This document shows, piece after piece, positions 36,705 to 43,450 of a DNA stretch of 64,000 nt. The position numbers and the translations under genes were made by a program. Origin of the DNA: Saccostrea cucullata (Eukaryota); the NCBI RefSeq assembly GCF_032062105.1, contig NW_026935501.1, forward strand, positions 1 through 64,000, read 5' to 3'. How positions within the stretch are numbered: position 1 is the first letter of the stretch; the number at the start of each line of letters is the position of its first letter. The notes below the pieces were generated by a model. The model had not been told where the DNA came from and did not search any database. It was given only the letters and a program-made list of their open reading frames with translations.

Positions 36705-36759
36705 ATGTCAAGAGGCCTTCCGATTGTAGCAGTATCCCTACTGTGTTGGATTGTTACAG
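36705..36759 (+). CDS. Exon 1, signal-peptide-like segment of the CTLD-PR/SET gene
   Basis: ATG at 36705, basic residue then hydrophobic run (MSRGLPIVAVSLLCWIVT-VLIA), donor CAG|gtaaaa in phase 1. An AG acceptor at 36675-36676 suggests an upstream UTR exon. Confidence 0.75.
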
Positions 36760-39700
36760 GTAAAATAAATAAAAGCCTACCTTCCAAATTGTTAAGATTA
36801 ATGTAAAAGACAGAAAAGGGGAGGAGTCTTTAACTTTTGAATTTGTTGCAAATCGAGGTTTTGACTCTGTAAGGATTTTTTTTCTGAGGCAAAGACTTTC
36901 TCTGCCGTAAAAAGGAGGACAATTCAGTTCTCCAGAATACCAAACATTAATAATTTAATTCTATATGTAACGCGTCATTTGATTGGATACGGAATTTATT
37001 TTATATCTTCTAACATAAGTTGCCTACGTCACACGATATTATTTGTCAAACGTATGACGTTACTTTTAAAATATGCTCAGTCTGAAACCATTTTTTGGGG
37101 AAGAAAAAATGTCTTATCGTCTGGACTGAAATTAAATGATACAGAATGAAGCATATTTCAACCTTTGTTATACTCTATATCAAAATGTAGGACTATACAC
37201 GCAAATTGCCTGATTGATTGATTGTTTGTATACTGTTTAACGTCCCTCTCCAGAATATTTCACTGATATGGAGACGTCACCATTGCCGGTGAAGGGCTGC
37301 AAATTTAGGCCTATGCTCGGCACTTACGGCCTTTGAGCAGGGAGGGATCTTTATCGTGCCACACCTGCTGTGACACGGGGCCTCGGTTTATACGGTCTCA
37401 TCCGAAGAACCGCCCCATTTAGTCGCCTTTTACGACAAGCAAGGGGGTACTGAGTACTTATTCTAGCCCGGATCCCCACGGGGCAAATTGCCTGAAGTTA
37501 TGTATAAGTGTATAACATAGGTTAAAAAATAAGCTTGATTCCTTAAATATTATCACTGAAATTGTATCATATTTACCATGGCTCATTGACGTGTATTGAA
37601 GTACATGAAACTTTATATAATTACATGACTCTTTATAAAATGTGAAAACATAAAATTGTGTGAGTGGGAATGAGTTAAAGTTAAAAACATAATCTTGAAA
37701 ACAATAATACTTTTATAAAATTTATATCATATGACAGTTTTGATCGCCATTAATTCGGAACCTTTGAAATGTTCCCCTGGAATTTCCGGATCCGATGTCT
37801 TGAGATGCTCCCCGGGATTTGTCAATGTGAGTGGTTGGTGTTTCTCCTTCCACAAGGAACCGACGTCCATGTTGAATTCTAGTGACTTTTGTCATCAGCA
37901 GGGGGCTCACATGGTCGTCCTAGATTCGGAGGAGAAAGAAAAAGTACTCACCAAATATATTGAAAGTAAGAGATCAGTAGTGGATGTAACTTAAAACAAA
38001 ATCCAGAAAACGAAGATTTTTATTTGTTAATTTCTGGCTGCTGTAGTTGAGACGTCATTATACAATGAATTTAATTTATTAAAAAAACTATTTATCTTAC
38101 AACCTGAACCGTATAATAGTGTCTAGGTTTAAAATCTAATTAATGTGAACACTCCTTCTGAATTACTTACTGCTGAGACGATAAAATGCATTAAATTGCC
38201 GTGTAGATCTAAGGTTACATAACCATTAAACACATATGTAAGAGGAAAATTGATTGGAAATTACTTATAGCCAAGTTTATACTGGAAATAAAATAATATA
38301 TTTTTTGTCGCTTCAGAGATGAATTTTTTCAACATANNNNNNNNNNNNNNNNNNNNNNNNNNNNNNNNNNNNNNNNNNNNNNNNNNNNNNNNNNNNNNNN
38401 NNNNNNNNNNNNNNNNNNNNNNNNNNNNNNNNNNNNNNNNNNNNNNNNNNNNNNNNNNNNNNNNNNNNNNTAAGGATAAACGTGTTTTTCATTAAATCCT
38501 CAGAAATGCTTTTGCTCTGAATTCACCAGCTGCAGAAATGTAGCCCTCTTATTAAGAAAATTCGAAAGTACATCGAATGCTGTACAAGAATCTGTGGTTC
38601 TCTGGTTTATCTGTTCAACTTTTCCTTTATCTCTGCCACAGTCTTCTAACGGGCTGAACCTGCATCATTCTTCCACATTAACAGAAATTTATTATATTAA
38701 CAGGAACTTTATCATATTTACTGGAACTCGTTTTCATTAACAGGAACTCTATAACAATAAATGGGACTCTTACAATGAAAGAAATTCTATGACATGAACA
38801 GGAACTCGATTACATGAACAGGAACTCTATAACAATAATAGGAACACTGTTACACGAACAGGAACTCTATTACATAAACAAAAACTCTATTACAATAAAG
38901 GGAATTCTATTACACGAACTCTATAAAATGAACAGGAACTCTATTACATCAACAAAAACTCTATTACAATAAAAGGAATTCTTTTACACAAACTCTATTA
39001 AATGAACAGGAACTCTATCACATCAACAAAAACTCTATTACAATAAAAGGAATTCTATTACAAGAACTCTATTTCATGAACAGGAACTCTATTACAATAA
39101 CAGGAACTCTATCACATTAACAGGAACTCTATTACATTAACAGGAACTCTATTACAATAACAGGAACTCTACAATAACAGGAACTGGAACACTATTACAT
39201 TATTTAACAGTAATTCTATTACATTAAACTCTATTACAATAACAGGAACTCTATTACAATAACAGGAACTCTATCACATGAACAGGAACTCTATAACATG
39301 AACAGGAACTCTATTACATTAACAGGAACTCTATTACAATAACAGGAACTCTATTACAATATCAGGAACTCTATTTACTATCATTATTATAACTCTCTTA
39401 TTATCATTATTAAATTTATTGGAACACTATTACATTAGCAGGAACTGCATTATTTTAACAGTAATTCTATTACATTAACAGGAACTCTATAAGATTGCTC
39501 AGAGGGAATGGGACATTGAGGCTGAGAAGAAAAACTGTAAGTATTAGTGTTCACCAACAGCCTGATAGGAGAGATAACTCTTACTATAATGAGTGTTTGT
39601 TTGTTGCTTTTTTTTAAAGAAAAGGATCAAATAAAATGTCCTTGTCTTTCAGTTTGTACATATTTTAATCATAAATTAGATTTTTATTAGAAAATGTCTC

Positions 39701-41493: not shown

Positions 41494-41561
<68 letters not shown>

Positions 41562-43450
41562 TGTGTGTCTCTCTGTCTGTCTGTTTGTACGCGAAAACTT
41601 TAATACTGCCCATTGCTTTTGATTTAGTGGAGCTATGACTATCATATTTCACATGTGTATTTTTGTGACAAGACCTTTCCTAGGGTACCACATAACTTGA
41701 CATTTTGACTTGGCCTATGAGTTTGACCCTGTTTTACATAAAAATCCAAACTTTTACTTTGGCCAAATCATTTGAACAATGGATACCAGGGTTGTTATAA
41801 TTTACATATAATTCACATATATATTTTGTTAAGAGACCTTTCATTGGATACCAACAACTTTGACCTTGGAGATTTTAGTACTTGTGAAAAAACTTTAACC
41901 TTGGCCATAACTTTTGAACGGTAAGGCCTAGGGCTTTCATATTTCACCTAATTGATCCTTGTGACAAGAACTTTCATTTGATATTAAAATTCTTGACCCT
42001 TTGACCTTGACCTTTGAGTTTGACACATTTTTACACAAAAAATCTAACTTTTACTTTGACACTAATTTTTTTCAATGGTAGATTCTAGGAATATCATATT
42101 TTAAATATCAAGTCTTCGTGACAATAGCTTCCTATTGAAACCAACAATTTAAACCTTTTGACCTTAGAAATTACACATTTATAAGAAAACTTTACCTGGC
42201 CATAACATTCGAATTATAAGATTTAGGTCTTCCAAGCTTCACTTACATGTATGTAGTCATTGTGAGAAGACCTTTCGTTAGATTTCAACACTTTTAACAC
42301 TTTGACTTTGACCTTGGTTTTTGACCTACTTTTTACAAACAAATCGGAGTTTATCCTACCTTTAAAAACGCTTACCTTGGCCGTTACCTTTGAACAGGTT
42401 GTGCAAGGGTTTTCTATGTCATATTTGTATTTTTTGAAAAGGCCTTACTTTTTGTACCAACATATGTGATCTGCATTTGAGAAACCTTAACCTTCGCTAT
42501 GTTGCCATACGGGGGTATCAAAGTTTCACAAACACATCTTGTTATTGCATGTTGTTGTTTCTTGGAAGGATTTAAGACGTAAACCCCATACACCTGGGTA
42601 TATACGGAAACAATTAATTCATAACATGCTTTCATTTTTATCAAATGCATACAATAACAAAAATATTTTTGTCAAATTTCTCTACAATGTAATTGATTAA
42701 AAACTTGATACTCTTTAATCAAGAAATATGTAGATTATATTTTAACACCTTTGATAAAAAAGTTATTTAGATTTTTTTTTGCTTTCTACAAATCTGATTT
42801 TAAACTTAAAAAAAACTGCACATTAAATCTGGAAAATATATTTCTGCAGTGTATCAAAATTGTTTATTTCTAATTTCACCCATAAACATTATATTCCTAT
42901 GTTATTCAAATTGAAATAAAGTTTGGCCTAGGTTTGCTTTTGCTCGTTAGAAAATATTCTATTGTTACACATATATACCACGACGCAAAAAGAGAATACT
43001 TTCCCTTCAAATGTCTACTGAATTTGGATACAGCGGATCAAATTTTATAATTTTTAGAGCATTCAGGATGTAAAGCAACAACTCATATTGTATCGATGGT
43101 GTTTCAAATTTGAAGATTATATAATTTTTTTCTTGTCCTTTTCTGCAGAAGTTGATCTCAACGGTTCATTTGCATTTCGTGCCAATGTTTTGACATTTGA
43201 CGACAATGAAAGACTCATTTTTGATAATTGGACACCAGTGACGTATCAGAACTGGAATCCTAACGATGAGGGCGAGACAGCAGTTGACCCAATCTTTGGC
43301 CTCCTTTTGACTTATCATAACGACGGCAGGTGGCGCTGGGTGACTGAGAGAAACTACACGTACTATACAGGAGAAGACGGACTAAAACTTCCCTTTATTT
43401 GTGAGGATTCTCCATTTTATTTGGAGCATGAAGAGTGTTCTGTTACATAA
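36705..43450 (+). CDS. Spliced gene (8 coding exons): signal peptide + C-type lectin-like domain split by a PRDM9/PRDM7-like PR/SET domain, about 387 aa
   Basis: Exons with AG/GT boundaries and compatible phases: 36705-36759 (MSRGLPIVAVSLLCWIVT), 37738-37965 (CTLD N-half), 38317-into gap (KMNFFNI..; 38 nt in the paralog), 39494-39536 (IAQREWDIEAEKKN), 40014-40078 (FCADFIKHG..NAK), 40449-40643 and 41097-41334 (PR/SET), 43149-43450 (CTLD C-half, TAA). No stops in the visible exons. All eight exons recur in the same order at 3656-10688. Confidence 0.85.
37214..37482 (-). mobile_element. SINE-like retroposon in intron 1 (Deu/Nin-like core, non-tRNA head)
   Basis: 13-bp TSD GCAAATTGCCTGA (37201-37213, 37483-37495), (AATC)n tail, core cggatgagaccgtataaaccgaggccccgtgtc shared with the other SINEs; absent from the pseudogene intron. 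Confidence 0.9.
37738..37965 (+). CDS. Exon 2, N-terminal half of the C-type lectin-like domain
   Basis: RCSPGFVNVSGWCFSFHKEPTSMLNSSDFCHQQGAHMVVLDSEEKEKVLTKYIE fits the long-form CTLD pattern CP.GW...CY.F...FC...GAHL..I.S.EE; cag| acceptor, |gtaag donor, phase 1-1. Confidence 0.88.
38337..38470. other. Assembly gap (134 N)
   Basis: N run. The equivalent position in the paralog holds the end of exon 3 and a (GA)n tract (5161-5218). Confidence 0.99.
38675..39493 (+). repeat. 20-bp minisatellite (ACAGGAACTCTATTACATTA)n in intron 3
   Basis: About 40 units ending at the exon 4 acceptor. Confidence 0.93.
40449..40643 (+). CDS. Exon 6, N-terminal part of the PR/SET domain
   Basis: RANLTTPAGFAIKSSSLPGAGMGAWAETFVPKFTILGVYEG...YSWQ parallels PRDM9 [25 protein letters not shown]...FGPYEG...YSW; 195 nt, phase 0-0. 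Confidence 0.9.
41097..41334 (+). CDS. Exon 7, C-terminal part of the PR/SET domain
   Basis: IDAEDPACSNWLRFVNSPAKYQQENV...[28 protein letters not shown] contains the PR-domain motifs NW.R.VN, IFY and ELLVWYG..Y; phase 0-1. Confidence 0.93.
41436..42543 (+). mobile_element. Helentron/HINE (pearl-like) non-autonomous element in intron 7
   Basis: T-rich start ttttatgccc, GTCT/CT microsatellite, diverged internal repeats rich in tgacctt/ccttggccataact, end gggggtatc..tttcacaaacacatcttgtt; absent from the pseudogene intron. Confidence 0.75.
43149..43450 (+). CDS. Exon 8, C-terminal half of the C-type lectin-like domain
   Basis: FDNWTPVTYQNWNPN...DGRW...KLPFICE fits the CTLD pattern W.DG.P..Y.NW...G.W...LPFICE; ctgcag| acceptor in phase 1; TAA at 43448-43450. 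Confidence 0.88.

Follow-up and report, generated by a model that had tools for sequence, protein, structure and literature searches.

The window analyzed here comprises the first 64,000 nucleotides of contig NW_026935501.1 (assembly GCF_032062105.1, forward strand) of the oyster Saccostrea cucullata. It holds an eight-exon gene on the plus strand (36705-43453, stop codon included), the predicted product of which encloses a PR/SET domain akin to that of the histone methyltransferase PRDM9 in a C-type-lectin-like domain (CTLD). The initial annotation had assigned a signal-like start, the N-terminal half of the CTLD, a linker, the PR/SET domain, and the C-terminal half of the CTLD to one gene, a layout that is confirmed for the family to which the gene belongs and very likely for the copy in the window. 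The parts of the gene, in window coordinates, are as follows.

36705..36759, plus: exon 1, with the start codon and the larger part of the hydrophobic segment (signal peptide or anchor); ends in phase 1; kept in paralogues
37738..37965, plus: exon 2, N-half of the CTLD (beta0, beta1, helix 1, helix 2); ends in phase 1
38317..38336, plus: readable 5' part of exon 3 (linker), running into the gap; acceptor used in RNA; kept in five ungapped paralogues
38337..38470, no strand: assembly gap (N), truncating the short exon 3 at its 3' end
39482..39536, plus: exon 4, long linker helix; starts in phase 0
40014..40078, plus: exon 5, end of the linker helix with an invariant Cys at 40016-40018 (remnant of the PRDM zinc knuckle), and start of the pre-SET segment
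40449..40643, plus: exon 6, N-half of PR/SET, with the glycine-rich cofactor loop and the Y276 equivalent at 40590-40592
41097..41334, plus: exon 7, C-half of PR/SET, with the N-W-x-R-x-x-N motif and a family-specific invariant Cys at 41220-41222; ends in phase 1
41238-41240 and 41286-41288, plus: equivalents of Y341 and Y357 in exon 7, from residue comparison with PRDM9
43149..43453, plus: exon 8, C-half of the CTLD with the closing Cys; coding to 43450, then stop

Exon chain and transcripts

Every readable splice site of the gene is GT-AG, and the reading is open over 94 codons to the left of the gap and over 284 codons to its right, up to the stop. The exons were searched singly, the two sides of the gap were translated apart, and the gap was left unfilled. 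Given the phase-1 end of exon 2 and the phase-0 start of exon 4, the length of exon 3 must be 2 modulo 3; as the gap cuts the 3' end of this exon, the frame of the window copy across it is unreadable from the window, and is probably kept. The exons of the insert are bounded by two phase-1 introns, as exon shuffling would be expected to leave them. The three cysteines of exon 2 are invariant across the family, and the six N-X-S/T sequons named in the initial annotation are all present in the gene.

When RNA runs of the species are mapped on positions 37700-43500, coverage falls on the exons and most introns stay bare, save for interspersed repeats. The joints listed include five junctions, from lectin exon 2 through PR/SET exon 7: the joints 37965-38317, exon 4 to 40014, 40078-40449, and 40643-41097 were found both in raw polyA reads and in the contig set, and the joint bridging the gap (38336 to 39482) in one transcript contig (run X1) and one read (X22), the number of intervening letters obeying the 2 modulo 3 rule. 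An acceptor at 40459, joining exon 2 straight to the PR exon, was ruled out, as RNA uses 40449 and three linker exons. The chain from 37965 to 40449 foreseen by the initial annotation was thus recovered in RNA; the junction 41334-43149, also foreseen, is absent among the joints listed, and an RNA contig maps on exon 8. The reads differ from the window at 6 positions in exon 2, and agree with none of five tested paralogues at all eight listed sites. Because they differ from the window, they represent the family (another animal or another copy) and not the window copy.

The gap inside exon 3 and the junction missing from the list would fit a chance nesting, or a mis-assembly at the gap, that had fused two separate genes. 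We consider such an artefact very improbable, and at the family level it is already refuted, for the same exon order is found in five ungapped paralogues and in gene models of five other oyster species, and relatives carry the whole open reading frame on single contigs of 1.2-1.4 kb from public RNA runs, lengths that fit a spliced mRNA.

A PR/SET domain of PRDM9/7 type in a predicted C-type-lectin fold

The PR/SET assignment is strong on exon 7 (Pfam PRDM2_PR, PF21549, E-value 1.7e-21; SET, E-value 5.1e-9), and PRDM9 is the best match of the insert in the Protein Data Bank, with a profile E-value of 2e-39 versus 2e-28 for the next PRDM and a Foldseek E-value of 3e-16. Tyrosines Y276, Y341, and Y357 of PRDM9 are needed for catalysis (PMC5519329); all three have equivalents in the window copy, and these are found in 34/36, 36/36, and 36/36 aligned rows, respectively, among which the N-W-x-R-x-x-N motif and the glycine loop are as fixed as the catalytic tyrosines. 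The insert resembles PRDM9/PRDM7, as well as PRDM11 and C. elegans SET-17, in its pre-SET segment, its three catalytic tyrosines, and its cofactor motifs, and is, as judged from its sequence, of PRDM9/7-type origin. The gene product is, however, not an orthologue of PRDM9/PRDM7. As the initial annotation had noted, it lacks zinc fingers and KRAB: neither KRAB, SSXRD, nor a C2H2 zinc-finger array gave a Pfam match in the exons or in full-length members. In addition, the pre-SET zinc knuckle (Cys3-His) is reduced, a single Cys aligning to the knuckle of a spider PRDM9-like protein, the C-half of the lectin domain stands in place of the post-SET segment, and the protein has a secretory-type N-terminus and sequons. 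The 36-row alignment contains six invariant cysteines, an even set, four of which are standard for a long-form lectin domain; the insert contributes the remaining two, one at the position of a Tyr in PRDM9-type proteins.

The fold was predicted with AlphaFold for a paralogue from another locus (P0026, 97-99% identical), folded with 36 relatives (pLDDT 88.4, pTM 0.80); a single-sequence fold of the insert (pLDDT 35) was not used. Structural searches divide the P0026 model into two domains. PRDM9 aligns over residues 82-242 (Z 19.2), and the bivalve lectin SPL-2 over residues 4-345, with 134 of its 138 residues (Z 15.7, root-mean-square deviation 2.6); >30 CTLD structures match the model at residues ~4-345, with Z of 12-16. 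Because these CTLD structures align almost whole, the two lectin halves are predicted to close as one C-type-lectin fold around the PR/SET insert, in keeping with the initial annotation. The model displays the double-loop CTLD fold, including its two helices and the pairing of the first strand with the last, and the insert (long helix, pre-SET, and PR/SET; about 195 residues) would depart after helix 2. At the level of domain profiles, the expected lectin match is weak on exon 2 (Lectin_C, E-value 0.037), and exon 8 alone has no Pfam or Lectin_C match; the family profile matches many CTLD structures, and the identity of exon 8 rests on its structural match as one CTLD with exon 2.

Long-form CTLDs (SPL-2 of Saxidomus, struthiocalcin/ovocleidin-17, RegIII-alpha, CD69, and mannose-receptor CTLDs) are alike over the whole fold and tied, with Z of 14-16. 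By sequence, the oyster protein shares with them the N-terminal Cys pair and the Cys pair of helix 1 and the last strand (beta-5), which are both invariant in the family and predicted to form disulfides, but it differs by its insert, the loss of the inner disulfide, and an identity of only 10-19%. QPD and WND are absent in 17/17 full-length members, the sole EPN string (in P0075) falls in the PR part, and no WIGL motif is in place in the lectin part. Because there is no EPN/QPD/WND site and the inner disulfide is lost, calcium-dependent sugar binding is unlikely, and the product is predicted not to be a calcium-dependent lectin. What stands of its initial description as a lectin is thus the fold, and the term is used here in that sense only. 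In genomic terms, a C-type-lectin-like gene contains, at a phase-1 intron position following helix 2, an exon block with the pre-SET and PR/SET of a PRDM9/7-type gene.

An uncharged N-terminal run is found in 16/16 members examined, and is weak (8-10 residues) in four. In the clade of the window copy the hydrophobic run spans 18-20 residues (20 in the window copy), whereas other clades have shorter, cleavable-looking ones. The window copy has no 19-residue hydrophobic stretch after the N-terminus (maximum Kyte-Doolittle value 0.97). The hydrophobic N-terminus and the absence of any later transmembrane segment fit the secretory-type start that had been proposed, but the 20-residue uncharged run may itself be an uncleaved membrane anchor in the window clade. 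The family rows contain 75 sequons versus 44.7 +/- 6.1 in shuffles, an excess inflated by related rows. Shorter RefSeq isoforms exist (305 aa), and forms skipping the signal exon might act in the nucleus or cytosol, where S-adenosylmethionine (SAM) and histones are available and where the lectin halves would substitute for zinc fingers as a protein-interaction part. We find this intracellular role unlikely, given that the signal exon is conserved under selection, that sequons are in excess, and that the disulfide cysteines of the lectin part are invariant.

An oyster family with many copies

A search with exon 8 returned full-length proteins of the same layout, and further searches widened the set. 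Members were identified in S. cucullata, S. echinata, Crassostrea virginica, Magallana gigas, M. angulata, and Ostrea edulis, under the database names "PRDM9," "PRDM7-like," "set-17-like," or uncharacterised; one S. cucullata database protein is identical to the two sides of the window gene at 91/94 and 281/284 residues. The architecture proposed from this genome is thus found in five other oyster species as well. Matches outside oysters cover the PR part only and the named matches with the full layout are all from oysters, but, as the searches were restricted by length and by word matching, confinement to oysters is observed rather than proven. In a tree of the PR part, the oyster proteins group together with moderate support (87/86) and form about six paralogue groups. 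Most of these hold two or three genera, which indicates that the family diversified before those genera split.

Compared with two intact paralogues, the window copy shows synonymous (dS) and nonsynonymous (dN) divergences of dS 0.112/dN 0.006 and 0.194/0.010, that is, a dN/dS of about 0.05; for the PR part versus an orthologue transcript, dN is 0.19 at dS 2.4. The window copy is under purifying selection. The genome contains 152 matches to exon 8, 119 to exon 7, and 70 to exon 2, many of them broken or partial, and, because the assembly is fragmented, these counts may partly reflect haplotype duplication. Saccostrea is the only genus in which a burst of copies in the clade of the window copy is seen. 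About half of 20 copies share a right-hand end near window positions 44900-45030, and their 5' ends are scattered; this shared end is not conclusive for transposon-borne copies because it lies close to the edge of the compared stretches. Two further copies lie in the window, and the paralogue that had been put forward as having the same exon order does have it, but is broken:

3657..10685, plus: broken paralogue, same exon order, with 2 stops and 3 frameshifts
16912..17205, plus: further copy of the last exon (exon 8 match)

Other copies lack the PR exons. On four contigs (C7595:16967-18169, C18968:18066-19262, C854:12677-13821, and C6032:12558-13756), a copy of exon 2, 85-91% like that of the window, lies ~700 bases before a last exon (51-53%) with no PR exon match between them; these may be lectin-only recombinants between tandem paralogues, joined phase 1 to phase 1. 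Five copies or gene models (L024, L025, L034, P0002, and P0145) keep exon 1, sometimes exon 2, and the last exon without PR exons, as deletion derivatives or skipped forms. Tandem arrays have also grown from exon edges. In the window, an intron array at 38675..39490 contains 42 copies of a 20-bp unit matching the exon 4 acceptor and first bases, and in the paralogues L021 and L039 a 31-bp unit arises from the end of exon 6. A 40-bp array lies just upstream of the start codon (36069-36507, 11 copies; 31 copies in the paralogue L022). Adjoining the lectin-SET gene is a gene with PAN and fibrinogen-C domains (45902-48857, minus), duplicated together with it and with a partial second copy at 19954-20172 (minus), and a broken reverse-transcriptase remnant of a LINE (long interspersed nuclear element) is found at 26689-28320 (minus).

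Predicted function and significance

The reading that we favor, with a probability of about one half, is that sequence and model describe a protein-lysine methyltransferase of the secretory pathway (in the endoplasmic reticulum [ER] or Golgi lumen, or secreted) with a lectin-fold targeting module; it would be an animal lysine methyltransferase drawn from the meiotic histone writer PRDM9, placed in the secretory pathway or outside the cell and aimed by the C-type-lectin fold that encloses it. Catalytic and cofactor residues are retained in all paralogue groups. The PR/SET block would have been acquired through exon shuffling that preceded the split of the oyster genera. The protein would enter the ER and be N-glycosylated, and its two insert cysteines, one left over from the zinc knuckle and one new, may form a disulfide replacing the lost zinc site. 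The sugar-blind lectin fold would bind a protein partner and present the partner's lysines to the active site, natural guesses for the substrate being secreted lysine-rich matrix, mucus, or defence proteins. SAM may be supplied by a Golgi carrier of the MFS_5/SAMT-1 type: the genome has an intronless MFS_5 gene (C22911:110773-111720, SAMT-1/MFSD5-type) and a spliced one on C23494, and this family has been put forward as the carrier of SAM in the Golgi of nematodes and plants (10.1101/2021.07.06.451061).

Several points weigh against this assignment. The replacement of the PRDM9 post-SET segment by the lectin C-half and the loss of the zinc knuckle may change cofactor binding, and the insert disulfide is itself a prediction from the cysteines, just as activity, location, and substrate are predictions from sequence and model. 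MFS_5 carriers are widespread, so that their presence is weak support. Free SAM is scarce outside cells, which makes a truly extracellular enzyme less likely than a luminal one. Finally, the conserved tyrosines are also compatible with a role in binding only. The protein could then be a secreted non-enzyme whose PR pocket reads peptides that are lysine-rich or come from histone tails (candidates include extracellular histones of haemocyte traps and microbial surface proteins), with the lectin fold as scaffold or opsonin. This possibility, which we hold to be rather doubtful, would suit the scarcity of SAM, the location of the gene among PAN-fibrinogen genes, and the fast gain and loss of copies in this genome, where >100 exon matches include many broken ones, although the burst has been observed in no genus but Saccostrea and the counts, in a fragmented assembly, may include haplotype duplicates. 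In addition, the cofactor glycines and asparagine match the substrate-channel tyrosines in invariance, whereas a pure reader would be expected to have lost them in some of the six old groups. An immune role may be considered on two grounds, the neighbouring PAN-fibrinogen genes and copy turnover, but the protein could just as well act in shell, cement, or mucus.

The nearest solved relative being an H3K4/H3K36 methyltransferase, PRDM9, with the catalytic residues intact, the protein might also be a delivered effector, secreted and then internalized via its lectin fold in host cells or in a eukaryotic parasite, where it would methylate histones and the SAM problem would be solved. We regard this as improbable: the protein has no translocation module or evident nuclear signal, and its disulfides and glycans are probable. 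Legionella LegAS4/RomA, which methylates histones in host nuclei, is likewise an exported SET domain and a distant match of the family profile (E-value 4e-5), but it differs in being delivered to host nuclei by a bacterial secretion system and in carrying ankyrin repeats instead of a lectin fold.

Alternatively, the 20-residue N-terminal run of the window clade resembles a signal anchor, and the combination of a lectin fold, a SAM-dependent fold, and an MFS_5 carrier in the genome would fit a Golgi type II membrane enzyme that O-methylates glycans while the lectin fold holds the sugar; the methyltransferases for methylated glycans of invertebrates are stated, for C. elegans, to be unidentified (PMC6422873). 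We judge this quite unlikely, since SET chemistry suits amines and the lysine-channel tyrosines are kept, no sugar site is in place, methylated glycans are far more widespread than a family found in oysters only, and the signals of other clades look cleavable.

For the favored lysine methyltransferase, the closest functional analogy is with the diatom BacSET proteins, from an unrelated lineage and likened by description, not by sequence. BacSETs have reportedly been proposed to act in the secretory pathway as lysine methyltransferases of secreted wall proteins, and we know of no lectin fold in them; the family searches, which were not aimed at BacSETs, gave no diatom match. The expression of these SET-domain proteins accompanies formation of the cell wall in the silica deposition vesicle (10.1101/2020.11.23.393678).

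Known animal PR/SET domains act as enzymes in the nucleus or cytosol, and C-type-lectin folds are known for binding outside the cell. In line with the initial annotation, which knew of no protein combining the two, a literature search that included six gene identifiers and covered subscription journals thinly found no publication on oyster lectin-SET proteins, and a shape search of the ESM Atlas returned PRDM/zinc-finger clusters only. One study assayed a "PRDM9" in oyster gonad (PMC12111275), but no link between it and the family could be made. The nesting of PR/SET in a CTLD is thus undescribed as far as these searches reached; it is the architecture that is new, its function being predicted. 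If the protein is active, lysine methylation of secreted animal proteins would have a defined enzyme, and the gene would be a clean example of domain insertion through phase-symmetric exon shuffling. Many oyster genes annotated as "PRDM9-like" or "PRDM7-like" are lectin-SET proteins, and such annotation can be misleading in work on recombination, epigenetics, and stress transcriptomes of farmed oysters.

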